Below are positions 7,201-59,816 of a DNA stretch of 64,000 nucleotides, piece by piece. The DNA lies in the NCBI GenBank assembly GCA_900088475.1, contig FLMG01000943.1:57402-121401 (forward strand). The letters are read 5' to 3'. A program made the position numbers and the translations under genes. The notes under the pieces are model-generated. The model was not told where the DNA came from. It saw nothing but the letters and a program-made list of their open reading frames with translations, and searched no databases. Within the stretch, counting starts at the first letter, position 1. Each line of letters starts with the position of its first letter. This DNA comes from Hyphochytrium catenoides. Taxonomy: Eukaryota > Protista > Hyphochytriomycota.

Positions 7201-8786
7201 TTCCTTGGTTGGGTTAAGCCCAAAGGTGAAGTGAATTCTGGCTCCAATTATTTGCTCACGGCTCTTTCCAAATACTTCAACAGTCTCGAGGTCTTGAGTC
7301 AGCCGAGGAAGAGGACGAAGGCAGCAGCAGTGGGATGTTTAATGACGATGGATCGTCTACCTCGAGCTCAAGACAGCGTTATCTAGGTAGTCCTAGAAGA
7401 AGACGCAGGGATTCTCGTCTCGGTGGTAAACACGAACCAGGCGGAGAAGAGGGCAGCTCTGACAACTCATGTCCGACCCAAAGGGAGAAGCCCAAGGCCT
7501 ATGCTAAGGTCACAAAGCCAAATCTGGTCTTTCGAGCAATTGCCCTTGATTGGCTCCTGGATGCGAGGAACTACCTCTATCGTGACACTAAAAGAATAGG
7601 AAAGGAACATGATGGGCCGACGGTTATAGAGGACGCAACAAGTGGCAAACTGAAGCAGAATGAAGGTGAATCATCTTCCACGTCCACCAACTGGCTCCGA
7701 GCTTTATCTCTTTATAGGGCGGAATGCCAGGAGGCTCTGTCTCTGGGATTATGTGGAATGACCCTACTGGCTTTCGTTCAGCTTATTCTATCGTCGGAGG
7801 AGGAACTGGCCTCTATTTGGGACGCGGTAGAAATAAACTGCAGATTGCGCCTAGAAGAGAGCAAATGCAACATCCAGTTACTGCGAGACACAGAAGCCTT
7901 GACGATCCCATCTCCCTCCTCTGCCCGCTCTAACTCCACTAACGGGTCTTCCTCCTCGTCTGGTCCTGCTTCAGTGTCTGTCTTGGACATCAACAGAGAA
8001 GAGTTGTCTCTTTTGGTGGAAAATAAGGAACATATTGATGTGAACAGTCATGATAATGTTCTCCAGTCGGCGTTGAAGGATGAGAAAGAGCAAAAGACTA
8101 GGTTGGAAGAGGTTCTTCGCAAAAGGCAAAGAATTGGAAAGAAAGCTCAATCCACCACAACCCTTCTCGCTGAAGCCTTTCTGGCCCTGGACGATATATC
8201 AGAATCTGTTACGGCTACGCTGTTTGGTCTTCAGAAGTTCTCGGGAGAGAGTATTCGGACCCTTGCTTCAGAAAGAGGTCTCTTAGAGTTTCCTCCAATG
8301 ACCGTCGTGGCAGTCAATGATGCTCGCAGAAGCTACCACTTGGGTTTCCCCTTAGTTGACGTGGACAAAGAATCTTTATTATCCAGTTGTCGTCTCCATG
8401 GTACTGAGCCTGGAGTAAGCCCACCTCCTGACGTTGGGAAAGAAGAGACAGAAGAGGTGCCGCCTATAACAGATCTCTCAGGCAGCAGAGTTTGTGCTCC
8501 CTACGTTGAGACGACAGTGTCTGCCTGTGCTACTCCCCTCCTCACAGTCAAAGCTTTGGCTGCCTATGAAGCGATAGATGATAGTGAATTGCCCCTTCTT
8601 GAAGGCGATCTACTCACAGTAAGGACTCAGGATCCTAGCGGCTGGTGGTATGGAACTAATAATGGCACTGGGAGAAGCGGGTGGTTCCCCTCCACATTTG
8701 TGCAGGTAGCATATGATCTATGGACAATTATGGAGACTGGCACCCCGCGATCCGAAGACTGGGACGATCAGACACCACGACGGTAG
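4291..8786 (+). CDS. MSP (VAP-type) domain plus C-terminal SH3 domain protein, ~1219 aa, 6 exons
   Basis: Exons 4291-5035, 5143-5298, 5448-5623, 5780-6360, 6459-6957 and 7284-8786 sum to 3660 nt in frame. MSP signature AVAFKVKTTAPNRYQIKPPMGII and DKFLVQS. SH3 signature VKALAAYEAIDDSELPLLEGDLLTVRTQDPSGWWYG...GWFPSTFV. Confidence 0.85.
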
Positions 8787-35582: not shown

Positions 35583-37661
35583 TCAAGTTGCTCCGATAAT
35601 GTTCACCAAGGCATGCTTATCGGCGATGGAGTTGAAGTCAAACCTATCTCTGGCAGTGGCGTAGAATAATGCATGAGGACAAAGGTAAGGGGACCCAACC
35701 AGGAGAAGACCGAATATCGCTGGTAAAAAGTAACGCTTTGGTGTTACGTACCACCAAGTCAGCAGGTCAATGCCAATGACGCGGTGGACAAGGACCAACA
35801 ACAACAACACCTGCAAAGTGGCCACGCAGAGCTGCACCGCAATAGGCTCTGCCGCGTAGGTCAAAGCGGCCCTGAATCTGGCCTGGTAGCCTAAAGAGTG
35901 GTCCAGATAGCCCATCTGAATCTCGTACGCCTTCGTGTGGATGCCTGAACTGAACCCAATGCCACCGAAGGCTGTGAAAGCCATAGAAAAGGAGGTGTAA
36001 AGGTAAACACTGCGCGAAGTCTTGACCGCGTCGCTACGCTCTGATCCACTTTGGTCGAGAACAGAACGGCGCCGGTTTCGTTTGCTCTTACGAGGATGCT
36101 GCTGCTGCTTTTGGTCGCCTTCATCATCACGTCCACTACTTGTTGTCTGACAGTGATCATTATGACCATCCGTTTGGAGTACATCATGCTCAATCAGGCG
36201 TAGCTGGGACGGGACGGAAGAATGGCTAACAGCTGGCTGTGAAAATTGCTCCTGAGCGCTCCTGGGAGGATCTCGCATCACCTCGCCGGACAGGATTGGG
36301 TCTCCGTCGTGAGGTGGTAAGCTCTCGATGGCTGTGACTTGCGTTGCCGAAGCTGACGGCCTCCTTGAGCTTCTTTGATAGGCAGCTAGCAGCCGCCTAG
36401 TCGTTCTCGATATTCTGATGCCTATGAGGGCATCTCTCAGACCGATCGACAGAATGCTAGCTAGCGATACAAACCCGCTTGACAGGCAGACACTTAATAC
36501 GTAGGGCAGATCTCCAAAGTTAACGACCTGCTGGCAACCTGATATAGCGAAGTTGAACACAAAAACGTGCGGAAACCAGTTCTTATCTACCTCCCCGAAG
36601 TTGAAGTGTCCAGTGAAATGCAGCTGATACGTTTCATAGCGGACAAGATTCTGAAACACGAACACGACAGCTGGGATTGCCAGCGTGCTGAAACAGATCT
36701 TGAATATCGTGGAGTACTGCCCTTGCCATAGCAGAAGCTGCATAGGAAGGATGACTTTGGCGATGATCTCCACGGACACAACTGCGCACACGACAGGAAA
36801 GGCAACCCAAGCGGCCAATTTGACCCGGTCCCAGCGACTACCTAACGGCAATGCCAGCGGGTCTGGTGAAGACATTCCCGCTCCAGTGTGAAGTACCCTG
36901 TATGTCCCTTCGACACTAGCAGTTCCCAAGGGCCCCTTTTCGCGCCCCTCCTGTTGCTGCGTTTGGTGTGATGCCCCTTTAGTCCGTTGGGCCTTCTCCT
37001 GAACGTGATCTTTGACCTCCACTCTTCTGACACCGTTGTTGACTTTGCTTCTACAGACGTCAGTAGTAGGGCTTGCTGATGCTCCTATTCTGGTGCTGGT
37101 GATTTTCTCTTGATTGGCCTTGTAGCGCAGCAGGTAGGTAACATAGAAACTTGAGTAGATAAAGGTGAGGAGAACGGGGGTAACATAAGCAATGTAATAT
37201 GGCCAGCGCGTTCTTGTGCTATAGCCCCAGAAGTTTGAAAGTGCGGTGAGGACAACATTTGTCGTGTACATGCCGAAGAGCTTCCATAAGGGGTAGAACT
37301 TCCCGATGCGTCCATAGGTTGAAGTCAGTAGTACAAACAAAGGCAAGAATTGAGCGGTGGTTGCAGTGAAGGTTGAGTTATAAATTGCTCGACCTGCGGA
37401 GGCAGACAGTGCTGAAGACCCAACAGCGAAGAGTCCATACGCCTTTGCCAGCGGACTCTCGCAGGCGTCGGGCCTCTCTTGTATGATTAGCTGGCAGTCG
37501 ATCGGTTCAACGACAAGCTCCATGAAGGCCGAGACGACCGCGTAGGAGCACCCGAAAGCAAAGAGAAAGAGGCAATAACATAGCGCCAGAAGGGAGGATG
37601 CGGACACCCATACGGAGGGAGAGCCCGCATGACTCGACCGGAGAAAGCCTTCATCAATCAT
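35583..37661 (-). CDS. Uncharacterised ~11-TM membrane protein, paralog A (692 aa, intronless)
   Basis: Long ORF with hydrophobic segments in 4+4+3 blocks separated by two low-complexity loops. It aligns end to end with 40609-42951. Confidence 0.9.
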   Translation of the reverse strand: MIDEGFLRSSHAGSPSVWVSASSLLALCYCLFLFAFGCSYAVVSAFMELVVEPIDCQLIIQERPDACESPLAKAYGLFAVGSSALSASAGRAIYNSTFTATTAQFLPLFVLLTSTYGRIGKFYPLWKLFGMYTTNVVLTALSNFWGYSTRTRWPYYIAYVTPVLLTFIYSSFYVTYLLRYKANQEKITSTRIGASASPTTDVCRSKVNNGVRRVEVKDHVQEKAQRTKGASHQTQQQEGREKGPLGTASVEGTYRVLHTGAGMSSPDPLALPLGSRWDRVKLAAWVAFPVVCAVVSVEIIAKVILPMQLLLWQGQYSTIFKICFSTLAIPAVVFVFQNLVRYETYQLHFTGHFNFGEVDKNWFPHVFVFNFAISGCQQVVNFGDLPYVLSVCLSSGFVSLASILSIGLRDALIGIRISRTTRRLLAAYQRSSRRPSASATQVTAIESLPPHDGDPILSGEVMRDPPRSAQEQFSQPAVSHSSVPSQLRLIEHDVLQTDGHNDHCQTTSSGRDDEGDQKQQQHPRKSKRNRRRSVLDQSGSERSDAVKTSRSVYLYTSFSMAFTAFGGIGFSSGIHTKAYEIQMGYLDHSLGYQARFRAALTYAAEPIAVQLCVATLQVLLLLVLVHRVIGIDLLTWWYVTPKRYFLPAIFGLLLVGSPYLCPHALFYATARDRFDFNSIADKHALVNIIGAT

Positions 37662-40608
37662 TGCTCAAAAGCTGCGCAACAATCATGCTCAACTGCAGCA
37701 GCAGACAGGTAATCTTCCTCTCTCATTTTTTCTTTTCAATGAGTGTGACTTGTGTCCATGCCGCCGTGGTAAACGGTTGGCGAAATCCATTTATAAATTA
37801 CCTTGTTGTGCCTTGTTTGCTACCCGAAAGATTCCTGTTGACGGCATGTGTGGATGCTGAAAAAAGATAGGGATGCAATTGCTGCCGATTGACTTCGTTT
37901 CCTTCACCACAATATGGTCTCCACCCAGCAATAATAATGAGACGGACACAAACAGACCGCCCCGGTTGGTTAATAGCGCCTTGAAGAACTCAGCTCGTTC
38001 CATTAGAAGACGACAAGGCGGACATCCGTCGTGCACATGCAGACTGAACAACCTATAACCATAGGTAGACTACCTTTCAGCTTTCTCATGTGGCCAGACC
38101 ACAATAGCGTCGATGATTAGGATGGGCGGCGTTGGACATCAACTGTCACCAGCGCCGAGACGGGGTCCGTGCTGCCCACAGCAGAGACGTATGTAGGAGG
38201 TAGAGAGCCATAACCATAGACTGAGAAGAGATGTAGAACTAGAGGCAGCACAATCCAGTGTTGGAAATGACGACCAGCACCAAGCTGGAGATGATGGGGT
38301 GGGGCAATCTCAGAATCCCATGACACACCACAAAGCCAAAAGCTACCTCGAGAGCTTCACAGTGGGCCGTTTCACCTCAACTTGGAGCCTTTCAAAACTT
38401 CACTTTCAATCTGAAGAATTCACCACCTCTGGGTCAAACTATACACGGATGTGGTATAGCTACGACTGGAAATTTATTAAAAGAGAACGAAAGATTTGAG
38501 AGAAAATAGTAGTTACCTACGCCTTAAGGCCTTATTCCTCATTCTTCAATCATACAGATTTCCTGTTTCTATTCCTGTCTTCTGCTTTCTGCTGGACAAC
38601 AGGAAGCAAGCAACAATGAGGGTGAGGTGGTGGGTGGGAAGGGTGATGAGACGCTTGGTAAATTTAGTGAGTATCACCACTTTTTTTTACTGCTAGTAAG
38701 GCCTTAGGCAGGCCAGGAAAGACGCTTGGTACAAGCAGTTTGTTCCTAGTGCGGCCAGGGCCTCTGATCCGGAGCAGAAGGAGGAAGCAAAAGCTGTGGT
38801 GCAAAATCAAAGATGAATCTTATAATTCTCACAGCGACGACTCCGCAATCCTTAACTCCTTACCTTTCTCAGACGGCACAGCAGGTGGCTCTTGGCCAGC
38901 AGCAGTGATGAAGAGAAGTCTTTATCAACAACAACTAACCAGGCAGAAAGAACTCCGAACTAGATCCGAGACGAACCGTTCTTTCAGACCCAATTAATCT
39001 TTACTTTGTTATCAGTACCTACTCCCTGGGTTGTCTTCCGGTCAGGAAGGCTTATAGGATGGTGCACCTAACCAATGCTGCTCTTGCTGTATAGCAGTCA
39101 TTATTAGCAGGAGGACCTATCGGAAGAGCAGAAGAAGGAACAAGAATCAAAGAGATATGGAAAGATGGCATTTTCTATTATAAGCAAATACTCATGAGCA
39201 CCACCACCACGTGTGTGCAAGAAGAAGAAGAGGAGCTAGTCAAGATTCATTATGCGCTATGTTACTTACCCTTCGCGAGAAAATAGCCTTAAGCAGTTTA
39301 TCCAGTTATTACTACTACCACCATATCGCGAAGGGAGAAGTTGTTTTTTCGTGAGCCTTCTTATCAAAACCCTCTCGGTTGCGACCAGTAGTTGTGACAA
39401 AGAAAACGTAGTAGTCAAAAAATGAGTAACGAATGAAGATGCTCGCTGTCTGTTACTACTAATAATAACCAAAGATAATTGGTATTTGTGCTTGTTGAGC
39501 TGTTGGTAGGACAACAGGATGGCAAGACGACGACGTCCCCACCACCGCGGCGACCGCCCGCTCGTTCGCCCATCGGTCGTATGATTATGATCGCCGCTCA
39601 TCGGAGTTAACTAGAAGTCCCAAGCAGAAGAAGAAGGGAATTCAAGGAGTGAAGCGGAAAAAGATGCCGCACGAGGGCAAATTTCCGCCAGCGATTATCC
39701 TGAGGATGACGTTGGTTCTAATGACGATGATGATTGTGCGTACGCCTTTCTCATCAAAAGTTTCCTCTGTGGTATCATCAGATCATCAGCATTTCGCCTA
39801 CGAGATTAGCGTTACCGGCTTCTGTAACGGCCTCCATCCCCACCTTGTTGCCTCCTAACTTTGACAGCCCTATCAATAGACCATGATCTCAGCAAAGCAG
39901 CAGGGAGTCCGCTCTGGAGGTAGAAAGACCGGAGAGGTAAGGCAGGCAATTAGGGAGATTTGCGAGTGGTGCTAAGACACTCAGGATGAGGAGGGCCAGG
40001 CTGTCTCTCTCCCGTGTTGGTTCAAGTATCATAAGAGACCACCCCAGGTCAACGAGTTGAACGATGGCGTTTGTTGTCTCCACAGGCAGGACCTCCAGGC
40101 TGTTTCCAGCCGCTGCAGTCGACAGGTTATAATACTTTGATGGTGAGATATGCCAAGCAACAAGAGGAAGGGAAGATCTGTTGGCAGCAGTGATGATCAA
40201 CGAGAACCTAAAAGATTGATCATGACATAGGTACTAACAGAGGCAAGACCAAGCAGAATGGATGTTTGAACCCCTCATCCTACGAACCTCCCGATGCTCT
40301 TGTTCCGCATTCACCTTACTGTGATGAATGCGGCGAACAAGGACTGTTAGGGAGACCACCTTATGGCTTCTCGTCAGTCAGCGGAGTCTCCATCTGGCAT
40401 CATCCATCATGATCATCAGCGTCTAGCGAGAAGTGTAAACAACAAGGACTCCATAGAGTCTCTTGCAGAGGCGGTCTCCATGCTGAGATGGTCCAAAAGT
40501 GATGAAAAATAGTTCTTCTATTGCTCAGATGTCACACGCTGCTTTTATTATTGCGAAGAGTCTGTCAGGAAGCAGAAGTGGTGGACAACCGGACGACTTC
40601 CCGTAAGT

Positions 40609-42951
40609 ATGATGATCTATCCCCTGACAGATGGGACGGCCAGCGACGCCGACGCCCAAGGGCGCAGCAATGCCCAAGTGACAGTATTCTCATCAGAAGA
40701 GGAGCACAGAAGACTATCCAAAACAAGGAGTAGTAGCATGATCTTGTCATCTTCGCTTTTCAGGCTCTTACTAGTTTGCACCGTAAACTTTGTGGCAGCG
40801 ACAGTGTATATGTACGCTACTGCGACAATGTTTGTCTGGCTAGTGACGGGAACTTTTGAATGTGAACAGCAGCTCGATGAGTCGAACAGCTGGCGATGTG
40901 AGCGATATTGGTCAAGAGCTCATGCTCTCTTCACGGGGTATCCCGAGGTTGTTTCCTACTCCTGGGGCCGGACGCTCTACGACCTTACGGTTACCACTCC
41001 CATAACACAATCAATCCCTCTGGTGATGGTTTGGATCTCAACTAATGGAAAAGTGCAGGAAGTCCATAGCCTGACAGTTATCCTTGGCTTGCAAATGAGC
41101 AGCATTGCTACCTGCAGCCTGACCGTCATCGGCGAACTACTGGTTGACCACCGACTGATATATTGGAACTACATCGCACCCCTGTTGCTGACTTTTGCGT
41201 TTGCCAAAATTCACCTGGACTTCCTCGTCCATAAGAAGAAGACGAAGATAACTCTTGCCACGGCCGAGAAAGGCGATAAGGCGAGAGACAACGACAAGAT
41301 GAGATGTAATGCAGGGGAAAACAATGTTTGCACCAACCAACAGACCGCAAAGCTCGGTAGCAGTAATGGCTGGAGAGGTACCCGAATAGTTGCAGGTGAC
41401 TCAACACCCACAGCCTTTCTGCCACCTGGGACTGATGAGGTTGTGGAAGGGTCTCATCAGGAGGAGAGCACTAAAATTACCACCACTGTGCGCTACACGG
41501 CTACATGTGGCGAGGAGATGAAGCAAACCCATTCTTACGAGCAGCAAAAGGGCCCTATCACCACTAGTACAAAACCAAAACACCACTTAACCCATGCTGT
41601 TGGCTCCTCAACAAGAGACAGAAACACAGAAGAGGGTGCTAGCCGCGTTCACAAGGACTTAGCAGCCGCTCCAAGAGGGCTTAGTAACTGGGGCAGAGCA
41701 GAGCATCAACCAACAACAATGTTGCGCAGACCAGATCGTAAGGAGCTTAAGCTCATGTCCTATATTGCGTTCCCTTCCTTAGCGGCAATAGGATGTGGAC
41801 AATTGATTGCTAAGGCTGTTCTACCAATGCACATTAAACTCATTGCAACTGAGGGTTCAACACATGTGACAAGAGTGTTGTTCAGCTCCATCGCTATCCC
41901 AAGCGCGGTCTTCTTCTTCCAGACCGTTCTACGCATCATTAGCTATCGGCTGCATCATGAGGGCCTCTTCACCTTTGGAAAGCTCCATCGCAACCTCTTT
42001 CCGCAGATCTTCATTTTCAACCTCGTAGTCTTATGTCAACAACAGCTGCTCTGCTATGGTGATCTATCGTATGTGGCTGGCGTCTGCTTTTTGTCGGCTA
42101 CCATATCTCTTGCTGCTCTACTCTCTATCAGCATCCGGGACTCCTGCTTAGGCCTCCGGGCCCTGCGCAGTAAGCGTCTTTCCACCTCTTCCTCCTCTAC
42201 CGGTTGCAATAGTCACGAAAAAAGTACACGATCCTCTTTTTCCACTCCACGTCGTTCTTCGTCAGCTGACTTCCTTCAGAACCCTCACGCCGGACGGACA
42301 GCAAGCCCTCGAGTACTAGATTCGTCCACGTTTGGCAGCCGTGAACCTGACAAAGATGGTCGTACCTTGCGTGCTTCGGGGGTTGGAGGGAACACAATTC
42401 CTAGGCTGGAACAAGTTTCCCAAGGAAATGGATTACACCACCAAGGCGTCAGTCAGAAGAACTGTCGGTCGGCAGCAGTGACGTCTGACAAGCTAATAGG
42501 GCCTCCCCGTAAGCCAGGGGGCTCTGCTGCCACACCAGGGATGATGACTGTTTCTCGTGCCGTATATCTTTACGTTGCCTTCGTCATGATTTTCTCAAGG
42601 TTCGCTGGGATTGGCCTCAGCGCAGGAATAGAGCTCAAGACCATGGAGATTATATTGGGCGAAGCTAACCCACAGGTTACCAACGGTGACGTGTACACCC
42701 TAGCTATTCGGTCTGTCACCCCATCAGTACTAACACAACTGGCAGTGACAGTACTTCAAGCGATTGCCCTCATTTATCTCCTGCAACGAGTGGTTAAGAT
42801 AGACGTTCTCCAGTATTGGGCAAGCACTTCCAAGAAATATTTTCTCCCTGGCATCCTAATCCTTCCTTTCGTGATCGGCCCCTTTGCCTGTTCGCACGGC
42901 CTTATTTACGCTATCAAACGTGGCACATACTTCGCTCAGCAGCAACCCTAA
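40609..42951 (+). CDS. Uncharacterised ~11-TM membrane protein, paralog B (780 aa, intronless)
   Basis: Same architecture and colinear motifs as 35583-37661, e.g. AFP...IAK..LPM, FS..AIP..VF.FQ, SR.VYLY..F.M.F..F.GIG.S.GI, K.YFLP. Confidence 0.9.
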   Translation: MMIYPLTDGTASDADAQGRSNAQVTVFSSEEEHRRLSKTRSSSMILSSSLFRLLLVCTVNFVAATVYMYATATMFVWLVTGTFECEQQLDESNSWRCERYWSRAHALFTGYPEVVSYSWGRTLYDLTVTTPITQSIPLVMVWISTNGKVQEVHSLTVILGLQMSSIATCSLTVIGELLVDHRLIYWNYIAPLLLTFAFAKIHLDFLVHKKKTKITLATAEKGDKARDNDKMRCNAGENNVCTNQQTAKLGSSNGWRGTRIVAGDSTPTAFLPPGTDEVVEGSHQEESTKITTTVRYTATCGEEMKQTHSYEQQKGPITTSTKPKHHLTHAVGSSTRDRNTEEGASRVHKDLAAAPRGLSNWGRAEHQPTTMLRRPDRKELKLMSYIAFPSLAAIGCGQLIAKAVLPMHIKLIATEGSTHVTRVLFSSIAIPSAVFFFQTVLRIISYRLHHEGLFTFGKLHRNLFPQIFIFNLVVLCQQQLLCYGDLSYVAGVCFLSATISLAALLSISIRDSCLGLRALRSKRLSTSSSSTGCNSHEKSTRSSFSTPRRSSSADFLQNPHAGRTASPRVLDSSTFGSREPDKDGRTLRASGVGGNTIPRLEQVSQGNGLHHQGVSQKNCRSAAVTSDKLIGPPRKPGGSAATPGMMTVSRAVYLYVAFVMIFSRFAGIGLSAGIELKTMEIILGEANPQVTNGDVYTLAIRSVTPSVLTQLAVTVLQAIALIYLLQRVVKIDVLQYWASTSKKYFLPGILILPFVIGPFACSHGLIYAIKRGTYFAQQQP

Positions 42952-43394: not shown

Positions 43395-45788
43395 CTAGAG
43401 GTCACGTTGACCAGAGGTGCCGAGATGTGTGATGGTGCCCAAACCCCAGTGCTTCTCGAACCTCCACTCCAGATTATCTTTCAAAAGACGCTTAGATTGC
43501 GGCATGGCACACTCATCGTTGTATGAATTCCCTCCGGTTTTGCAACGGAAGACATAGTGATTATAGACGACGAACCAATTTGCTGGGACAAATTGGACCC
43601 AGCGGAGCCGATGTCCTGCAACCGCGCTAGGCGACTTGCCTAATAGAATGGATGCGTGCACTTCGAATGCTTTCTTGAGTAGATTGCCACGGGTGGTATA
43701 AAGATCAATGCCCTGATGCCAAAGAGTTTCTGCGATGCCTGAGAGGCCCCCAAGAGACATCTGTGCATGAACAACGTCCCTCTCGATGGTTTCACTGGTC
43801 AATCCGTCACCCTTCAGCACTTTCTCATATAGTCGCTTAGCGTTGGAGACGCTACGGTCAAATAGGACTTTGTTGTCAGTGAAAATAGCGTACTGGAGTT
43901 TGGCTTGCGTGATGGTGGTTCCCCAATTACCCTCTCCGGCCCATTCCGTTAGCATCCCGTTATCGTCATCAAAAAAGTTGAGATGTGGCATAAGAATTCT
44001 GTCTACAAAGCTCCTGAAGCGGCGTTCGACGTCGACATTGGACCAGCCAGAGTATGTGTGCTTCAATAGCTCCGCAGACATGGCAAAGCTTGCCAATCCC
44101 CACCCTGCTTCTAAGGGCCCGTTTTGCTCCATCGGACCGAATTTCTTGCAGGTAACGGACCATGCTTTGATAATCTGGACCGCTTTGGCGGCATATCTCT
44201 CCTGCCTGGTGAGTAAGTACGCGATGGTGTGCTTATAGCTACGCTCGGCATCCCCGGTGAAGTGCTCGTGACCACCAAACGCTCCCATTTTTACCTTCGC
44301 TTGAAACCATCCTCTTTTCCTCTGCAATGTCTGAACTGCGGCGCTGGACATTCTAGCTAGCTCACTCGGCCCGGGATTACCGATGACATAGACTTCTTCT
44401 CTAGCCTGTGGTGAAACTGTTAAGTCAGCAGCCACAAAGTCCAATAGCTTTCTAGTGCTGGTCTGCACAAGTTTCGAGTTGCTACGGAGCCCGCGAAGCT
44501 TTCTGATCTCTGCAATTGAAAGCATTGTACCCGGATGCTTGAACGTTTGACCTGTATCACCGTAGGAATTATCCAAAGTAGCCGCAGGATCAGAGTCACC
44601 TAATAACTGCGATTTAGATTTAGTTGAGGTCGGTTGGGGGGTGGGTTTTGGTTGAGGGAGAGGTCTAACAGGAGTAGGAGGAGGAGGATACCCCACAGTC
44701 GACGCTGGTGAACGCGGGGACGGCTTAGGTTTGTTCACGGCAGGAGGCGGCGGAGAGCTAGATGGCTTCACGTAGCCGTCGCTAACATCACGTTGAGCTT
44801 GAACATCCGGCCCTATGCGGTCAGACTCTGTTCCGTAATCATTGGTTATGTCTGGCACAGGAGATGGGGTTGGGGCAGCAATTTCTGGGAAGGATGGGCT
44901 AATGGGTCTAGGGTTTGGCAGTGGTCTTGGTGTGGTGGAGTCGTATCCATTACCGCTGCTTTCGGGTCCATTACTCTTTGTGATCGTTATTGGTCTGGTC
45001 AAAGTCGGCAAGAGGTCCTCCTCCGCTTCTTCAGGGCAGGGTGGATCTTTCGGAGAGGAATACCACTGAAGATTATCCGAAGGAGTATCTGAAGCGTCGG
45101 AGCTAATGGCATCCGGTGCTCCCTTCCCAAATATTCCTAAACCATTCCAACGACCGCTTAGGATAGTAGGTTGTGTCAACAAAGCTGGCATCATGGCGTT
45201 CCCTAAAATGATATCATGGGCGTTTACAGTACTATCATCTTTATCTGTGCTTGGTATGGGCTTGACAACAGGCGTGGGACTAGGACTCTCACCTCCGCCA
45301 TAATAGCCAATATTCTTGTCTTCGGCTTGTAACTCCGTTCCAGGCAGGAAGGGGGCTAAGTAGCCGGTAGCCTCCCGGATTGGAGTCATGGCATCAAAAG
45401 ACTGAGAGGTTCCGTCCGTGGAAGTTAACACACCCTCTGTGTCCGATGACTCCCATACGGAACCAATAGCGGACGACGGGGACCTAGTATTGACCTCGCG
45501 CAGAAAAGGTCCTGAGCTAGATTCCCGGTTCCAGCCATTCTGAAAGTTTTCATAGTCTTGAGTTTGGGGTACTTGAGGAAGCCAAGAGCCCTGACTATCT
45601 ATGCGTAGCGAAGGTAGGCCGAAGTTGTTCAACAATTGATTCACCGAACCCAGCATGTCCCAACCTCCGAGTGTCTTGCTACTTCCAACCTGAGGGGAAG
45701 CTAGATTTACGTTGCACCTTGCCGACGCTACCATAAGTAGTAGTAGTAGCATGGAGGAGAATACATATTCTCTAGCACAGGCGGTCAT
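43395..45788 (-). CDS. Secreted polysaccharide lyase-like protein (Alginate_lyase/PF05426-like C-terminal domain) with Pro/Ser/Thr-rich linker, intronless
   Basis: Signal-like MLLLLLMVASARC, then ~400 aa of P/S/T-rich linker. The C-terminal domain has FKHPG, YAAKAVQIIKAWS, AELLKHTYSGW, GNWG, ETIERDVVHAQMSLGGL..IAETLWHQGIDLY and WGLGTITH. Confidence 0.8.
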   Translation of the reverse strand: MTACAREYVFSSMLLLLLMVASARCNVNLASPQVGSSKTLGGWDMLGSVNQLLNNFGLPSLRIDSQGSWLPQVPQTQDYENFQNGWNRESSSGPFLREVNTRSPSSAIGSVWESSDTEGVLTSTDGTSQSFDAMTPIREATGYLAPFLPGTELQAEDKNIGYYGGGESPSPTPVVKPIPSTDKDDSTVNAHDIILGNAMMPALLTQPTILSGRWNGLGIFGKGAPDAISSDASDTPSDNLQWYSSPKDPPCPEEAEEDLLPTLTRPITITKSNGPESSGNGYDSTTPRPLPNPRPISPSFPEIAAPTPSPVPDITNDYGTESDRIGPDVQAQRDVSDGYVKPSSSPPPPAVNKPKPSPRSPASTVGYPPPPTPVRPLPQPKPTPQPTSTKSKSQLLGDSDPAATLDNSYGDTGQTFKHPGTMLSIAEIRKLRGLRSNSKLVQTSTRKLLDFVAADLTVSPQAREEVYVIGNPGPSELARMSSAAVQTLQRKRGWFQAKVKMGAFGGHEHFTGDAERSYKHTIAYLLTRQERYAAKAVQIIKAWSVTCKKFGPMEQNGPLEAGWGLASFAMSAELLKHTYSGWSNVDVERRFRSFVDRILMPHLNFFDDDNGMLTEWAGEGNWGTTITQAKLQYAIFTDNKVLFDRSVSNAKRLYEKVLKGDGLTSETIERDVVHAQMSLGGLSGIAETLWHQGIDLYTTRGNLLKKAFEVHASILLGKSPSAVAGHRLRWVQFVPANWFVVYNHYVFRCKTGGNSYNDECAMPQSKRLLKDNLEWRFEKHWGLGTITHLGTSGQRDL

Positions 45789-48094: not shown

Positions 48095-51000
48095 TTAGGG
48101 TGAGTGACGCACGTGCGCAAGCTCTCCAGGGCATTCCCACGTGGTAGATCCTGTAACAACGTCATAGTAAAAAAAGTGCCCAGTAGCCTCGTCCACGTAG
48201 ACTTGCCAATTGCCTGTCTGCTGTATCATCGGGTTCTGTGATCGCCGATCGGTCCAACCCGAGGTGGAAGGGCCGGCGGGTTCTTCTCCCTGTCCGCCCC
48301 CACTAACGAGGGCGGGGGGAGGTTCCCATTGGCTCTGTCCTGTAGTAGGGTCATAATAGTATGTGCGCCCACTGCTTGGCTCGACTGCTTCGTACCACGT
48401 CGCCGTCGTGTTAAAGCTGCGTTCCGACTGGCCATAGTCTGACCTCCAAGTTCCTTCTATTCCAACGGAACCTTCTTCTGTGGGAGGCAGGATTACCGAG
48501 AGGGGACCAGGTATCGAAGGCGTGAATTGGAAGGAGGAAGGAGGAGCCCACTGTGAGACTCCGGTGATGGTATTATAATAATATACTTGGCCATGTGGGT
48601 CGGTCAACTGTTGCCATCCATCGTCCCGGGTATTGAATGCTGGAGAAGTTGAGGACGGCGGGATCCCATCGGAGACTCTTTCCACCTTAAAGCTTCCTGC
48701 ATGCCGGCTGCTGTCCTGTAGCTGTTCGTCTACCAACGCGAAAAGGGATGCGGAGGTCTGCACTCGCACTAAATCAGGACTTGGTGTCGTCAACGAAGAC
48801 GTCCTTTCCTTCTTCTCCTCCGCTGGCGGATAGTCTATCTTCTGCTCCTTCCTCGGACTAACCAGAAGAGAAGTTGAAGACGTTATGGATGGGAGGACCT
48901 CTGGAGGAGGTTCCCATCGAGATTCGCTTGTGATTGAGTTGTACCAAAACTTCTGCCTCGTTGCCTCATCGAAATACTCTTCCCAGCCCTCGGTGAGTGA
49001 GTTTACCTTTTTAGAGCTTATTCTCCTCAAAGTCCAGTCCGTTTCACTTTTTGGTTCCGAGATCCTGTCTTTTTGCGCGCCAATGACATCGAGGGAATTC
49101 TTTAAAGTCCCCGACACGGGTTCAGTTGGAGTGTATGCCACCGAGAAGGAGCCCTGCGGAGGCGCCCAGCTGCTTTCTCCCGTTTCCGGGTTGTACCAGA
49201 ATGGCTGACCACTGGCTTGATCTTGGTATTCTTCCCACCCTAAAGGAAGCTTTGCCATCTTTTTGGACTTCAGTCGTCTCATTTCCCAAGTCCTGCCTTC
49301 GTCTGTTGCCTGTTCAGCTTTTGCCAAGAGAGGAGAGGAGGAAGACGCAGGTGGAGTTGACACGGGTATTGAGGTGAAAGATGCAGTTGGCGGTTCCCAA
49401 CGACTCTCTCCCGTCTGCGTATTGTACCAGAAGGGTTTGCCGCTGGTTTCGTCACAGTATTCCTCCCATCCCAATGGAAGAACGTTCACCTTTTTGGACT
49501 GCAGCCTGCGCAGCTCCCATTTCTGAGCTCCTTCCTCTTTGTTCTCTTCGGCCTGGGTGCGGTTCGGTGGATTGAGCGAAGTAGAAGAAGATGTGGACTC
49601 GGCAATATGGGCCACTGAGTGTGACCTGATAGGAACATCTGAAGGAGGTGTCCAGCTGCTCTCGCCTGTCTCGCCGTTATACCAAAAGGGCTGTCCGGTG
49701 ACCTGATCTCTGTACTCCTCCCAACCCAGTCCAAAGGCACCCATTCTTCTTGAGTTGACACGGCGAAGTTCCCACTCCTTGGCGCTATTGTTATCCCCTT
49801 CTAGACGCGTCCCCTTAACTCCATCCTCTTTCCGCTTCCCGTCCTCATGTGATGGCTCATCCCATTGGTATACTCTAGTCGAGGGACAAAAAAAGAAGGA
49901 CTTGCCATAGCTCTTAGTATCCTTCATCACGTACTTTTCCCATCCGGGGACCGAGAGGGGAACACGGGATGATGTTGACCTCATCTCTTCCCAAAGACTT
50001 ATGTGCATTGAACCCTGAGAGGGCCCAACCTTTGTGCTTCGCTCTCCCTGACCCACACCTATCTCCGCAGGAATCTCCCACTGACTTCTTCCTGACTCTG
50101 CGTGGTACCAGAACGGCTTGAGCGAGACGGGATCGTAATATTCCATCCATCCTCCTGCAACCTCTCCTCTCCTCATGGAATTTTCCCGTCGCAAGCTCCA
50201 GGCGCTATTTGGAGCCTCCCACTGCGATTCACCGGTCTTGGCGTTATACCAGAAAGACTTTTTGGTGTTAGGGTCAATGAACTCTTGCCATTCGTTTATC
50301 GTCTTTGCAGAGCGAATGGATTTCTCTCGTAGAAGAGTCCAGTCAAGAGAGCCTTGGTCTTCAACTTTTGTCGTGGGCTCAGGAGGGGTAGCTTCAGAGA
50401 CCTTGTGGATATGCACAGGTGGAGGGCTAGGAGGCGGGGCGGGAGATGCTCCTATATCTTCTCTTGAGTCGCTGTCTTCAAAGTCTTCCTCGTCCAAAAT
50501 CTCTGCGTCTATGCTATCATACAAGTCCACGTGAAGAGAAGCCAAAGACTCCTTTATGGATGGTTTTGCGGCTCTGCCATCTGTGTGCTTCGCATCTCGC
50601 GCTTGCACTTCTGATTCCCTACCGCGTGAAGCAGAACTACCTGGCTCATTCTTCTCTCTCGGCAAGGTTCTATCTTCTGCTAGGATGTCACCTTGATCCT
50701 CCCGGTCCTTCCGCTCTTGCCCCTCCTGTTTCACCCGTCGAAACTCTTCCTGCAGCCTTTTCGCCTCTTCTTCCCTGTTTCTTGCTTCTTCCTCCTTCTT
50801 CCTCCTTTCTGTCTCCTCTTGTTGTCGCCGCAGAGCCTCTTCTGTAGCTCCTGATTCCTGGTCCTCCATGCATCGGTTGAGCTCCTCTTTATTTTTTGTC
50901 TCTACTTCTTTGCTCTTGTCTTCTAGGTCTTTCTTTCTCATCGCCGCCTCCTCTCGCTGTAGACGGATTTCTCTGGCTATCCGGTCCTCTGCTTCTTCAT

Positions 51001-54000
51001 TTGCTTGTTTGATGTCTTCCTGCCGCTGTTTCTCCTCTTCTTCCCTCTTTCTCGGTTCTTCTGCTTTTCTGTGATTTGTCTCTTGCTCCTCTTGTTGCTG
51101 GCTAAAGGCTTCTTGGCTAGCTATTCGCCACCTCTCTTCCTCCTTCGCTCTTCTGGTTTCTTCCTGTCGCTTTGCCTCTTCTGCCTTTCCCTTCTCCTCG
51201 TCCTCTTTCTTGCGGTGGTCTTCCTCCTCTTTCTGCCGTACCTCCTCCGCCTCTTCTCGCTGGCGCTGAACGTTTGTAGCCGAATGACGCTCCTCTTCCT
51301 CGTCCGCTTGCCTGAGTTTTTCCTGTCGCTGCGCCTCGCTCTTTCTGCTCTTCTCCTCCTCGTCCCTCTTTCTCCTCTCTTCCTCTTGGTGTTGCCAATG
51401 GACATCTTCTTTTCTGGATATTCGCCTCTCCTCTTCCTGCGCTACCGCTCTTCTGATTTCGTGACGCCGCTCCGCTTCCTCCTCCTCTCTCTTTTTAGAC
51501 TCCTCTCCTCTCTTTTTGGACTCCTCCTCTTCCGCTTGTTTCTTCTCTTCCTCCTCTTGTTGTCGCCGGAGTGCTTCTTCTCTCACTATCCGCCGCTTCT
51601 CCTCCTCCGGTCTCAGTTCCTCTTGCCGTTCACTTTCCTCTTTCTCCCTCATTCTCCTCTCTTCCTCATCTCGGTTTTTCTTTTCTTGGTCCTCTTTCTC
51701 CCGTTGAAGGGCAAATTCTCTCGTTATTCTCTGCTCTTCCTCCATCGCTCGGTTTTTAAGCTGATTCTTCCGCTCCGTCTCCTCGTCTTCTTTTCTCTGT
51801 CTCCTCTTTCCTTCCTCTTCTTGCCGCCGCTGTGCAGCTTCTCTCGCTAGCTGCTCCTCCTCCTCTGTTACTCGTCTTGACTTCTCCTCCTGTTTCCTCT
51901 GCTCCTCCTCCATTCTCCTTATACTCTCTTCCTCTTTCCTTTTCCTCTCTTCTTCCTCCGTCTTTCTTCTCTCACCTTCCTGCCGTTTTCTCGTTTCTTC
52001 CTCCTCTTCTTGTCGCTCAAGTGCGGCTTCTCTCGCTATTCGCCGCTGTTCCTCCTCTTTCGATCGCTGAAGGTGCTCTTGTCGCTCCCTCTTCTCCTCC
52101 TCTTCCCTCTTTATCCTCTTTTCCTCATCTCGCTTTATCCTCTCTTCCTGCCGGCGCTTCCTCTGTTCTTCCTCCTCTTGCTGTCGCAGGAGTGCGGCTT
52201 CTCTCGCTATTCGCAGCTCTTCTTCCTCCTTCGCTCGTTTACGTNNNNNNNNNNNNNNNNNNNNNNNNNNNNNNNNNNNNNNNNNNNNNNNNNNNNNNNN
52301 NNNNNNNNNNNNNNNNNNNNNNNNNNNNNNNNNNNNNNNNNNNNNNNNNNNNNNNNNNNNNNNNNNNNNNNNNNNNNNNNNNNNNNNNNNNNNNNNNNNN
52401 NNNNNNNNNNNNNNNNNNNNNNNNNNNNNNNNNNNNNNNNNNNNNNNNNNNNNNNNNNNNNNNNNNNNNNNNNNNNNNNNNNNNNNNNNNNNNNNNNNNN
52501 NNNNNNNNNNNNNNNNNNNNNNNNNNNNNNNNNNNNNNNNNNNNNNNNNNNNNNNNNNNNNNNNNNNNNNNNNNNNNNNNNNNNNNNNNNNNNNNNNNNN
52601 NNNNNNNNNNNNNNNNNNNNNNNCCTCTTGCTGTCGCTTGAGTGCGGCTTCTGTCGCTATTCGCACCTCTTCTTCCTCCTTCGCTCGTTTAAGTTGATCT
52701 TCTCGCTCCCTCTCCTCTTCCTCTTGCTGTCGCTTGAGTGCCGCTTCTCTGGCTAGTCTAATCTCTTCTCCCTCCCTCTTCCTTCGCTCCGCTTCTTCTC
52801 TCTGTCGTCTCTCTTCTTCCTCTCGCTTCCTCTGTCCTTCCTCTCGCTGCTTCCTCTGTTCTTCCTCCTCTTGCTGTCGCTTGAGTGCGGCTTCTGTCGC
52901 TATTCGCACCTCTTCTTCCTCCTTCGCTCGTTTAAGTTGATCTTCTCGCTCCCTCTCCTTTTCCTCTTGCTGTCGCTTGAGTGCCGCTTCTCTGGCTAGT
53001 CTAATCGCTTCTTCCTCCTTCCTTCGCTCCGCTTCTTCTCTCTGTCGCCTCTCTTCTTCCTCTCGCTTCTTCTGTTCTTCTTCCTCTTTTTGTCGCTTAA
53101 GTGCGGCTTCTCTCACTATTCGTCGCTCCTCCTTCTCTTTCGCTCGCTGAAGTTGATTCTGTCGCTCCCTCTCCTCCTCTTCCCTAATTCGCTTTTCTTC
53201 CTCATCACGCTTTCTCCTCTCTTCCTCCTCTTTTTGTCGCTGAAGTGCTGCTTCTCTCGCTATTCGCAGCTCCTCTTCCTCCTTCGCTCGCCTGAGTTGG
53301 TTCTGCCGCTCTTTCTCCTCCTTTTCTTCCTCCTTTCTCCTCTCTTCCTCCTCTTGCTGTCGTCTGAGGTCCGCTTCTCTCGCTAGCTGCAACTCCTTCT
53401 CTCTCACTCGTCTGACTTCGTTCTGACGCCTCCCTTCTTCCTCTTCTTCCTTCTTTCTCCTTTCTTTCTCCTGCTTTTGTCGCTGGATTGCAGCCTCTCT
53501 CGCTAATCTCTCTTTCTCCTCCTCCTCTCGACTAAGCTTCTCTTGGCGCTCTTTCTCGAGTGCTTCTCTCTTTCTCCTATCTTCCTCCTCTTTCTTCTTC
53601 TGCAATGTGACCTCTCTAGCTATGATCTCCTCCTGTTCTTTTGCTCGTCGGAAGCCCTCCTGCCGTTGTTTCTCCACCTCGTCCCTCCTTCTCTTCGCCT
53701 CCTCTGCTTGCCTCGTCTTGTTTGTCTCCTCTTTCTGTCGCAGCAGCACCATCTCTTTAGCTACTTGCAACTGCTCCTCCTCCTCCGCTCTTCTTACTGT
53801 GTCCTGTTGTTCGCCTGCCTGCACTTCTTCCTGCTTTTGCCTTAGATCCTCCTCGCTCAATGTTTCCAGCTCGGCTTCCGGCTGTCTGCTCCGTAGTTCC
53901 TGCTGTTCTTTCTCCTCCTTCCTTCGCGCTACTCTTCGAGAGAATACGAAAAGCCGGTAATTGGTCTGAATCACTTTGGCTGCTTGTCTCTTCATCACCC

Positions 54001-56407
54001 TTCGCCGAAGACGATCCCTTAGCATTAGGCCTTGAATTAGCCGGGCAGCGTCCTGAATGACAGTCTCATCCTCTTCTTCGTCGTCTTCCCATGAAGCTTC
54101 AGCTTCCCAGTCATCTGAAAACGCTGTTGCTGGCCCTTCCGGGTCAGCCATGGAAGCCTCTATCTCCCGGCTGATCTTCTTGACGATGGGACTGATATCA
54201 CTTGCAAAAGAAGGCGGAAGGAATTCCGAGTCACCTGGTTGCCCCGTTTCCTTAGACTCCATACTTATCTCCTCCTTAACTCCCTTGCTATCCCGCCCTA
54301 TGGTTGACGATATAGGACTCAACAGTGAAAGCTGGGCGGATTTTGCCCTACCGAGCAGTAGAGAGGCAGACTGAAGTGTGTCATCCTCCTCATCTTCCTT
54401 CTTCTTCTTCTCTTCAGAGGGTTTGTCCTCTGCTTTCAGCCTGCGGCGGCGGCTTGCCATAATCACGTCCCAGTCATCCTCATCCTCTACATCGGAGCCC
54501 ATGTCCGTGTTACTGACAGGTCCGACAGATGTTTCGCCAATGTGTCCCTTTCTCTGTTGACCTTTGCGAAGTAGATCATCTAGTTCCTTTAGGTTAATGC
54601 CCAGCTGCTCCTCCTCGGAGGATGCAACCCTGCCTTTTCCATTACTCTCTGTGAGTTGCTCTTCTGACTTAGAGGTTATAGGCTCGTCGAAATCTTCCTC
54701 ATAGGCCACCTCTTCCTCGCCACGACCTTGTCCAGAGAATTCAGTCTTTCCTGACAACGATACTGTCCCCACTCCAGCAGCGATCTCTTCTCCTGCCTCA
54801 ATTCCTGAAGAGGTGACCGAGGGGGCGAGAGAGAGTGATGTGGTGGCAGGAAACGTCGAAGAAGTCCTGGTATTTGTTGGAACGGGACGGGAGACCGGGG
54901 GCATAGATAATAGACGAGGTGGGGACGTCGAGCTGCCAAATGTCGATTTGGAAGCAGCTGCTGCGCTTGTCTCTCGGACCAGGGATGTGCGGCTAGAGTC
55001 AGAAGAGACCAGTTCTTTTCCATCATGTCTCTGTTCCAGTGAAGAGACGGGGTCTTTTCGGTCTTGCTCCTTCTTGAGTGCCGAAGAGGAAAGAGATTGG
55101 TGACTCCCAGTAAAGTATGTACCCCTGCTTCGGGAAAGAAACATTGTCGTTAGAGAAGAACGAAAGAACACAATTGGGACAATGACAAAAGCCTGCTACC
55201 AACTTCTTGAAAGGAAGCACTGACTCATAGGATAATGATAAGCTAGACTCTCAGCACGAAGAGGTAGCGGTAGTTAAAGCTAGACCCACCGAGACTCTCT
55301 TGAGTTTTGGACATCAATAGGAGCGAGGCTAACATTGCGACCTATCTCCACAGTCTTAGGTCGAACATCTGCAAGGAAATAGGCTTGTTTGTGCGAGGTG
55401 GCATTCCGTTCCCCTTCTTCCTCGTCTCCTCCCTCTGTCTGAAGATCAAGATCTTGGACCTGGCCTTCTTTGAAGCGGTTGATATAGTGCTCAATATGGC
55501 GAGAGCGTAACCTGTGAACGTATGCAGGCTTTTTCCACGGCTTCGAGGGACATGATCAGAGAAAATAAGATTCAAACGCATAAAATGACCAAGCGCTACC
55601 TTCTGCTTGTTCGCAATCTGTCGTTGAGGAGATTTCGGACCCTGCTCGTCTGCTTTCTTCCTTAGATCTCCCGCCGTCTTCGGCCTTCTCTTTATCTCCT
55701 GTCCCACTTTTTTGGCGGGAGTTAGCGTTTCCTTAGTTCCCTGAGCGGTAGCCTTCACGGTCCCCTGACCCGCGACTGTGTTGGGTTTGGGCGCTGTAAG
55801 TCTCAAGGATGGTGCCTTGGTGACCTTGCTTGCCTTGATTTTGGTAGGTTGTCTTGCTTCCTAGTTAGGATCACAGCTCCGAAGTCAGCCAGAGTTCTCT
55901 CGGACAAGGTATCGCAAGCAAGTCATTGCCGTATTGAGTGCTACGGCATAGACATAGCCGTTGACCTATCGTCTTTCTTCTTACCTGTAAAAGTAATTGA
56001 GTTTGTTGCTCAAGATTTCGAAGCCGTGAATCTCTGAACCCCGGCATCTTTGCGGCCATCTTGCCCCAACGGGTAGCGGCCTCATACTGCGCTGTCCCAT
56101 AACTGGAGCTTGGCGCGGCTGTACCGGGCCGCGAGGTATGCAGAGAACGTTCAGGACGCGCCGTACCTGGAGAGCGGCGAAGGGCAGGACTGGATTGAGG
56201 CCGTTCTTTGGGGCTTTTGTGGACTTCACTTGCAATTTCAACGTGTTCCAGATCTTCATCATTGTGACTCAGGTCCGGGCCGCCCTTACTTTTTTGTCTC
56301 TCGGTAGTCAGAGCAAAACTCTCTATATTATGGCGCCTGTCGTCACTACCCTCCTCACTCCATACTTGTATTGCCCGCTTGGCCGGGCGAATTCTACCAG
56401 GAGACAA
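48095..56407 (-). CDS. Giant protein (>2600 aa): disordered N-terminus, 2 IQ-like motifs, ~1000-aa E/R/K repeat rod, 10 WW domains; 5' end uncertain
   Basis: The final exon 55124-48095 joins phase-consistent upstream exons (...LLLQ|EARQPTKIK...NKQK|PWKKPAYVHRL...RESR|GTYFTG). IQ-like AARLIQGLMLR and AAKVIQTNYR. Ten W-x8-12-(F/Y)(W/Y/F)(Y/F)-x8-W-xx-P units. The CDS spans a 379-N gap. Confidence 0.88.
50700..53930 (-). repeat. Coding repeat array (~35-45 aa units) forming a charged helical rod
   Basis: Repeated RAKEEEE.RIAREAAL.RQ.EEEE.RKR units. A near-identical 243-bp-offset duplication occurs at 52624 vs 52867, next to the gap. Confidence 0.9.
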
Positions 56408-58098: not shown

Positions 58099-59816
58099 CT
58101 AGGGACCCCCAACGTTAAGTTGGCTAATCATCTGCGCCAGATACTGCTTTCCGTTCACTTGCTTGTTTTTAGGGGTACTCTTTGCAGCTCTAAGATGGTC
58201 ACCCTGTGAGATTTCATCCTCCTTTGCATTGGTGCCCAGTTTAAAGTCTAGCAGAGGCTGTTTAGGCTTCGCGGGAGAAGCTAAGCCGTTCTTCTGGATG
58301 ACCTGTTGAGAAGCCCTATTATGTGAAGTGGAGACGGAAGGTACCGACAGCAAGGACAAGTCAATCTTGGCGCCTGGCTTCGTAGTCTTGCCATACATGG
58401 GTGGCGTCGGTGCAAGACGGTCCTCTGCCGCCGAACAGCCATTGTGCTGCGCTCGGTATTCGTCTCCCATGAGCCACATACCTTCCTGCACCTGCTCCAT
58501 AAACTCTTGCTGAGGTCCAATAATCATACCAGGCCTAGATGGCATATGGGTACCCTTCATGAGTCAAACTGCAATTGGAGCTCAACCACATACCATGACG
58601 ACCTTGCCTTATATTCTCTCACTCTCTCATGCTGCAACCCGGCACTAATGCTTCTCCTACACTTTTAACTCACCTGCACAATCTCAGCCACCCAATGACC
58701 TCCCCAGCTGTAAACTTATAGTGCTTCATCAAGTAGGAGCCAATGAGGGACCCAGTTCTTCCAAGTCCGGCCTTACAATGGACAGCTAGTACACCTGGAG
58801 AAGCTTCCGCCTCAGCAAGAAAGTTCTTCAGAATCTTGTTAGGTGGGGTGCTTCCATCCAGGAAGTACATCTCTCTATGCTCAATGCCGGCACGAGTGAA
58901 GATAGACTCATCGTAGTACTTCTGGTTTAGCCTGACGACCATTGTAACACCATGCTTTAAGAAGTAAGGGATATAAGTGTCAGGTGTATGGGTGCAGTAG
59001 CCCTCAGGAGATACGGTAGATTCGCTGTGAGGCCCTGCGAAGGCAATGAACTTCTTTCCCACCCAGTGGAAGTCACCGTTCTCCACTTTTTCATAGTATT
59101 CGTACTCGTCGGCATCAAAGTCCGCAAAGTCAAAAAAGCCAAAGCGCAAAGCTTTTTCCATGCCCTTGGCCACGTCAAGAATGGTAAGATTATAAGTGCA
59201 GGCCGTTGGAGTTGCATCGTGAAAGGGCACAAAGGCCGGGTAGAAGTTTTGAAAAGGCCTGAAGGCTTCTTCTGCTGTCTTCTTTTCGTAGATGACACTC
59301 CAGCAGGTAATGAGACAGGCAGCGTTAGCTTGTCGGTGAGGATGTGTACCAGAGTAAAAGACGATGCGCTTTCCCTGAAGTTTGGGGTCTTGTAGCTTCC
59401 CATTGAGCATCTGACAAAATCTGTTGACGGGACCAGTGGAGTGGTTAGAAGTTAGATCAATTTGCCGTACCGTCATTGCCCTGTCTGGGCTTAGGGAACA
59501 TATGTCCGCAGAAGGACTGAAGCACAAAACCGTAATACATGAAGATATGCAGCCATGCTCAGGGCGACGTTGCACATAATGCTCTGGAGCAATGATGGAA
59601 AAGGGTAAGCCACTGATAGTTTCCTATCGCTTACCGATACAGCTGTCCAAGATTGAGGGGCCCAAAGTCCAAGAAGAAGTTCCAGTAGAGGAGCGTATCA
59701 TCAATAGTGAAATAATGGTCTCCAGAGGTCATGGTAGGAGGTGACCTCAAAGACATATAATACAGTCTATCAGGGACAATTTTGACAGCACCGCGAACTT
59801 CTAGCTCGTTTGGCAT
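58099..59816 (-). CDS. CDC14: Cdc14 dual-specificity protein phosphatase (~454 aa, 3 exons)
   Basis: Exons 59816-59635, 59420-58674 and 58534-58099 are in frame. Motifs FFLDFGPLNLGQLYRFC, YEYYEKVENGDFHW, catalytic HCKAGLGRTG, RPGMIIGPQQ. Confidence 0.97.

Follow-up and report, generated by a model that had tools for sequence, protein, structure and literature searches.

Proteins of the TMEM16, TMC and OSCA families are known to act as channels and scramblases (PMC11534332). A structural tie to these proteins, still tentative and resting on predicted models, is the most interesting lead from our analysis of two genes of Hyphochytrium catenoides, A and B. Both lie in a stretch of 64,000 nucleotides of contig FLMG01000943.1 (positions 57,402 to 121,401), which is called the window below and is numbered from its first letter. 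We found that A and B belong to a real, constrained and nearly orphan membrane family, in which the head-to-head arrangement seen here reflects one local duplication among several.

The gene pair and its proteins

Gene A occupies positions 35583-37661 of the minus strand (692 aa) and gene B positions 40609-42951 of the plus strand (780 aa). In the list of open reading frames (ORFs) both are intact and intronless, and they sit in DNA of about 49% GC. The genes are head to head, with the facing ATGs separated by 2,947 bp (37662-40608). BLASTP aligned A and B end to end over about 650 colinear residues with 27% identity (E 3e-78). The alignment recovered the cysteine pair after the first transmembrane helix (TM1), the motifs S.GR..Y..T.T...Q..PL and AFP...IAK..LPM, the block FS..AIP...Q...R...Y.LH, and the motifs SR.VYLY and ID.L..W....K.YFLP. 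Coordinates, strands and BLASTP agree in this with the original prediction, made by a reader of the bare sequence, which had described two colinear intronless ORFs about 2.95 kb apart and had listed their shared motifs. The spacer is single-copy genome-wide, a screen of it for repeats gave no significant one, and it is possibly a shared promoter region of A and B.

Hydropathy and AlphaFold secondary structure concur on 11 membrane helices in 4+4+3 blocks with two long loops between them, as had been proposed. Confidence of the models is given below as the predicted local distance difference test (pLDDT). The parts of the two genes are as follows.

37116..37610, minus strand: A block 1, residues 18-182, TM1-TM4, with the conserved cysteines C56 and C67 in the TM1-TM2 loop (alignment A1, hydropathy)
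36837..37115, minus strand: A loop 1, residues 183-275, disordered, predicted cytosolic, pLDDT 30-38, unalignable across the family
36387..36836, minus strand: A block 2, residues 276-425, TM5-TM8, the best-conserved part, with the strongest cross-paralog matches
36030..36386, minus strand: A loop 2, residues 426-544, disordered, S/R/Q-rich, predicted cytosolic, pLDDT 28-48
35622..36029, minus strand: A block 3, residues 545-680, TM9-TM11, with conserved G569, Q617, L634, W637 and Y667
40741..41238, plus strand: B block 1, residues ~45-210, TM1-TM4 with the cysteine pair (BLASTP and hydropathy)
41239..41733, plus strand: B loop 1, residues ~211-375, disordered, T/K-rich
41734..42168, plus strand: B block 2, residues ~376-520, TM5-TM8 (BLASTP and hydropathy)
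42169..42528, plus strand: B loop 2, residues ~521-640, disordered, S/R/G-rich
42529..42933, plus strand: B block 3, residues ~641-775, TM9-TM11 (BLASTP and hydropathy)

The invariant columns of A block 2 in alignment A1 are P306, P330, Q337, R341, Y345, Q377, S395, S399 and D410. The long loops of both proteins have pLDDT below 50 and could not be aligned. Serine, threonine and arginine make up 25-39% of them, the second loop being the richer, and S, T, R, Q and G are all abundant; the loops are thus as long, unalignable and S/T/R-rich as the original prediction had them. A comparison of the three helix blocks with each other by hhalign gave no internal repeat.

For the topology we counted lysines and arginines in the loop flanks. 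There were 18 in the even loops (the N-terminus, TM2-3, TM4-5, TM6-7, TM8-9 and TM10-11) versus 9 in the odd loops. From this excess we infer that the N-terminus and both long loops are cytosolic. The TM1-TM2 loop with its conserved cysteines is predicted to lie outside the cell, and the pair plausibly forms a disulfide.

The family in the genome

The 61.0 Mb assembly (4,759 contigs) was searched in six frames with A as the query and then with a six-sequence profile. Eight family members were found genome-wide, at five loci.

Window pair, A and B: head to head
C1288 pair, L016 1366-3422 (plus) and 5087-7270 (minus): tail to tail; one copy (C1288a) crosses an assembly gap
C3930 pair: in tandem
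C2295: a single copy on a 7.3-kb contig, with no partner there
C212, L015 2494-4613 (minus): split between TM6 and TM7 into two frames, 302 aa and 313 aa, by an intron or a frameshift

No further family copies were found flanking the C3930 and C1288 pairs. In the maximum-likelihood tree each physical pair was its own sister pair, with support of 100/98 for A and B, 100/100 for the C1288 pair and 100/100 for the C3930 pair. Since each pair is its own sister clade, the tree points to three local duplications that took place independently and left the genes in three different orientations, and the clades and orientations taken together indicate no conserved arrangement of an A-type with a B-type gene. 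For A and B, the colinear paralogy bears out the old inverted local duplication that had been proposed.

The two C1288 copies are 88% identical in the C-terminal third versus 59% in the N-terminal two thirds, and synonymous divergence (dS) is 0.23 in the former versus 1.2-1.5 in the latter. This difference suggests partial gene conversion between the copies.

Selection and allelic variation

Purifying selection acts on the helix blocks, whereas both long cytosolic loops are free to diverge. In the C1288 pair the ratio of nonsynonymous to synonymous divergence (dN/dS) was 0.20-0.27. For A and B, and for the C3930 pair, dS was saturated and gave no ratio.

Allelic differences were collected by comparing contigs of three DNA runs of one study with positions 35583-41582. 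The counts below cover 40 of the 89 substitutions and 12 of the 22 insertions or deletions (indels), and are therefore indicative rather than a full test. Among the 15 listed differences in the coding sequence of A and B, those in helix blocks were all silent (N143 in A, D125 and S135 in B). Most of the other listed coding changes were nonsynonymous and fell at codons 479-495 of A (loop 2), at codons 266-273 of B (loop 1) and in the N-terminal tails. The sole coding indel among those listed has 3 nt and is in frame, in A loop 2. The intergenic indels listed in the spacer include lengths of 1, 2 and 8 nt, which do not occur in the listed coding parts. These alleles, together with the dN/dS of the younger C1288 pair, agree with the original prediction that both copies were kept under selection.

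In the spacer the second haplotype differs from the assembly by many single-nucleotide polymorphisms, small indels and a 96-nt skip at 39321-39418. Such differences fit the reported high heterozygosity of the Hyphochytrium catenoides assembly (PMC5795050).

Relatives outside the genome

As far as sequence comparison reaches, the family appears small, lineage-restricted and almost without relatives in public data. A word-index protein search with A returned nothing, and a scan of metagenome contigs with A found no relative. No Pfam family was matched at E<=1 by the pair, or at E<=10 by ten family members, and sequence searches of the PDB with A and with profiles A2 and A3 gave rows at chance level only. 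The original prediction had recognised no MFS, GPCR, APC or ABC signature in the pair, and neither a Pfam signature nor a matching fold emerged here.

When 1.84 billion cluster representatives were searched exhaustively with an HMMER profile, a single protein matched, P0001 (E 3.8e-12). It has 561 aa and stands alone on a 3.8-kb contig of the public run SRR28521184, with no second copy there. Like the family, P0001 has the same helix blocks and the cysteine pair, and hhalign gave 97% over 511 colinear columns; block 3 of A is among the parts that match it. Unlike the family, it has much shorter loops, and its identity to the members is only about 16-17%. A word-index search with P0001 returned itself and no further relatives. 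The proteins of the window are themselves absent from the searched libraries, and the count of one therefore reflects poor sampling of the lineage along with true rarity.

By ESM Atlas features, the nearest clusters for A and C3930a (the short-looped copy of the C3930 pair) were oomycete 'transmembrane protein' clusters and PF28488 (SPCC553_12c) clusters. They scored 0.90-0.93, with 199-210 of 256 features in common and with recognition values of 1439 and 1398, which are below the reliable level. The profile search of the 1.84e9 representatives matched no oomycete 'transmembrane protein' or PF28488-type protein. We regard these clusters as a candidate lead only.

Fold resemblance to TMEM16, TMC and OSCA

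The AlphaFold (AF2) model of A, built from a 7-sequence alignment, had pLDDT 62.8 (70-90 in the helices) and a predicted template modelling score (pTM) of 0.62. The model of C3930a, from a 10-sequence alignment, had pLDDT 64.2 and pTM 0.71. Foldseek, which the original prediction had suggested for loop-deleted sequences, gave no match in the PDB at E<=0.001 for either model. In the shape search of the ESM Atlas all TM-scores were at most 0.26, except for one short partial match at 0.45.

The structural matches of the two models, with the Z score and the number of aligned residues, were the following.

A model, 5nl2_A (TMEM16A): 8.2, 240
A model, 8b8g_A (TMEM16F): 7.8, 236
A model, 8tkp_D (TMC-2): 6.9, 257
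A model, 7usw_A (TMC-1): 6.8, 255
A model, 5oc9_A (TMEM16K): 6.8, 272
A model, 6mgv_A (OSCA1.2): 6.3, 233
C3930a model, TMEM16A: 8.9, 244
C3930a model, TMC-2: 8.5, 259
C3930a model, TMC-1: 7.9, 249
C3930a model, TMEM63A: 7.4, 254
C3930a model, afTMEM16: 7.0, 238
C3930a model, OSCA2.3: 6.3, 248

All of these belong to the TMEM16/TMC/OSCA-TMEM63 (TCS) superfamily. For C3930a, adenylyl cyclase and Hrd1 followed as the next membrane folds, each with 5.9. A re-comparison over the top 977 chains from Foldseek gave 8.0 over 264 residues for nhTMEM16, 8.1 for TMC-2 and 6.6 for OSCA3.1, and at most 5.2 for ABC exporters, PPase, Mrp and adenylyl cyclase 9. Since both models and the re-comparison favour TCS chains, the resemblance of the predicted folds appears reproducible and specific among membrane folds. 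Thus the family is unrecognised, as had been claimed, with respect to sequence (Pfam and PDB), but not entirely so with respect to the predicted fold, which most resembles TCS proteins.

Comparisons by sequence, on the other hand, give the fold lead no backing. The alignment of family profiles A2 and A3 by hhalign with an anoctamin alignment of 12 sequences (the genome's own anoctamin and 11 database homologs) had a probability below 1%. None of the ten family members matched Anoctamin (PF04547), RSN1_7TM (PF02714) or TMC (PF07810) in Pfam at E<=10, and the profile searches of the PDB returned no TCS chain. The anatomy also differs: the family has 11 helices versus a 10-helix core in TCS proteins, and its TM4 and TM8 are each followed by a disordered loop (100-165 residues), whereas TCS proteins have a folded cytosolic domain after TM2. 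The family is also without an N-terminal cytosolic domain. Under an inferred mapping of its helices onto those of TMEM16, it lacks the TMEM16-type cluster of acidic Ca2+ ligands (TM6-TM8), D410 being the only invariant acidic residue in block 2. On balance, we give a TCS-like fold, as judged from the models, close to an even chance.

The genome separately encodes at least 10 canonical anoctamin loci and about five OSCA/RSN1_7TM loci (loci L024-L029; contigs C807, C4042, C3664, C3288, C2974, C603, C2726, C3031, C701 and C4483). The family is therefore not their replacement. The intronless anoctamin of C807 (L025 1264-4497, 1,077 aa) had its best matches, at 37-44% identity, among C2-domain anoctamins of the oomycete Aphanomyces.

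Two giant TIG-repeat genes were also observed, at 30-53 kb of C4462 and 29-57 kb of C2121 (L030, L031). In the first of them a frame change is followed by a multi-helix membrane module of 863 aa (L030 4283-6871). As a possible relative of the family this module was ruled out (hhalign 0.6%).

Proposed explanation and alternatives

In the explanation that we favour, A and B would be the two products of a single local inverted duplication in a small family of about 11 helices, with a helix bundle built, to judge from the predicted fold, like that of the TCS superfamily. Each protein would form its own membrane-spanning polar groove or pore, would conduct ions and/or scramble lipids, and would probably function as a dimer. 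The TM5-TM8 block may supply the lining through its conserved prolines and Q337, R341, Y345, Q377, S395, S399 and D410, and the disordered cytosolic loops may act as regulatory elements. With a single invariant acidic residue in TM5-TM8, the proteins are unlikely to be gated by Ca2+ through a site of the TMEM16 type. A and B are better described as isoforms that have diverged than as obligate partner subunits. While the anatomy, the selection pattern and the duplication history were shown, the groove, pore and dimer depend wholly on the fold lead. Taken as a whole, the explanation of one local inverted duplication, TCS-like conduit proteins and diverged isoforms is possible at a little under an even chance.

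The similarity to TCS chains could also be generic, of the kind that long tilted helices produce in an AlphaFold model of low alignment depth. The membrane family would then be an orphan with a fold of its own and no relation to TCS, and its proteins could be solute transporters, receptors or structural membrane proteins. Such a reading does not readily account for the observation that in both models TCS proteins alone among membrane chains align end to end, about 3 Z units above every other membrane fold (among them ABC, MFS-like, PPase, Mrp and adenylyl cyclase chains); still, we consider it a serious contender, with a probability somewhat short of even. It is scarcely credible, by comparison, that the two ORFs are relics without function or frames left open by chance. 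The gene was found in no RNA run, the C212 copy is interrupted and C1288a crosses the assembly gap, as one might expect of relics. However, open frames of 692 and 780 aa in DNA of such GC content, blocks conserved over eight paralogs and one foreign relative, dN/dS of 0.2-0.27, listed helix-block alleles that are only silent and a sole listed coding indel that is in frame all speak for functional genes.

The original prediction had raised a candidate two-subunit membrane system, possibly a co-regulated heteromer. In the form considered here, A and B would be co-regulated subunits of an obligate heteromer under a shared bidirectional promoter. The head-to-head order with one unique 2.9-kb spacer is in line with this, and so is the retention of both copies under constraint despite a drop to 27% identity; in dimeric families, moreover, paralog heterodimers are often allowed. 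However, among the eight members at five loci the other pairs are tail to tail and in tandem, each a separate duplication and its own sister clade, so that an A-type gene is not regularly paired with a B-type gene. At least one member (C2295) has no partner on its contig, and the sole outside relative is likewise alone. What was found is a dispersed family without conserved pairing, though a small one, which the prediction itself had named as an outcome that would speak against it, and we consider an obligate heteromer unlikely.

A further proposal linked the pair with its neighbour at 43395-45788 (minus strand), suggesting that A and B sense or import oligosaccharides freed by a secreted alginate-lyase-like enzyme. 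The neighbour (797 aa) indeed has a hydrophobic N-terminal leader and a C-terminal Alginate_lyase domain (PF05426, 8e-15), as well as a long P/S/T-rich low-complexity region. The genome has four alginate-lyase loci (C2510, C3354 twice, C3636), and only one of them, that of the window, lies next to a gene of the family; no lyase match was seen on the contigs of the other four family loci. The adjacency is best read as a coincidence, and the link to oligosaccharides is very improbable.

Returning to the TCS-like explanation, we suggest tentatively, at a probability appreciably below even, that the family is an unrecognised and extremely divergent TMEM16/TMC/OSCA branch. Its eleventh helix would be an addition, a Ca2+ site would be missing, and two of its cytosolic loops would be giant and disordered; it would so far be confined to hyphochytrid-like stramenopiles, and would have expanded there through local duplication beside a complete set of canonical anoctamins and OSCAs. 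If the fold assignment is true, a branch invisible to sequence comparison would be added to the superfamily behind hearing, osmosensing, chloride secretion and lipid scrambling, and the drift of its scaffold would extend to an extra helix, the absence of a Ca2+ site and large disordered inserts. If it fails, the family is another orphan among membrane proteins specific to one lineage, from a group of protists that has been sampled too little, useful for hyphochytrid annotation and unsurprising. Either way, the two-subunit, lyase-coupled reading is removed.

Other genes of the window

The window also holds a 2,358-aa open frame with at least nine WW domains (PF00397, 1.7e-75) at 48095-55171 on the minus strand, part of which coincides with a tandem-repeat region of strong CT skew (51.4-53.5 kb). 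Two ordinary eukaryotic genes were seen as well, a CDC14-type dual-specificity phosphatase fragment (DSPn and DSPc domains) at 58670-59575 on the minus strand and an SH3-domain protein at 7335-8786 on the plus strand.

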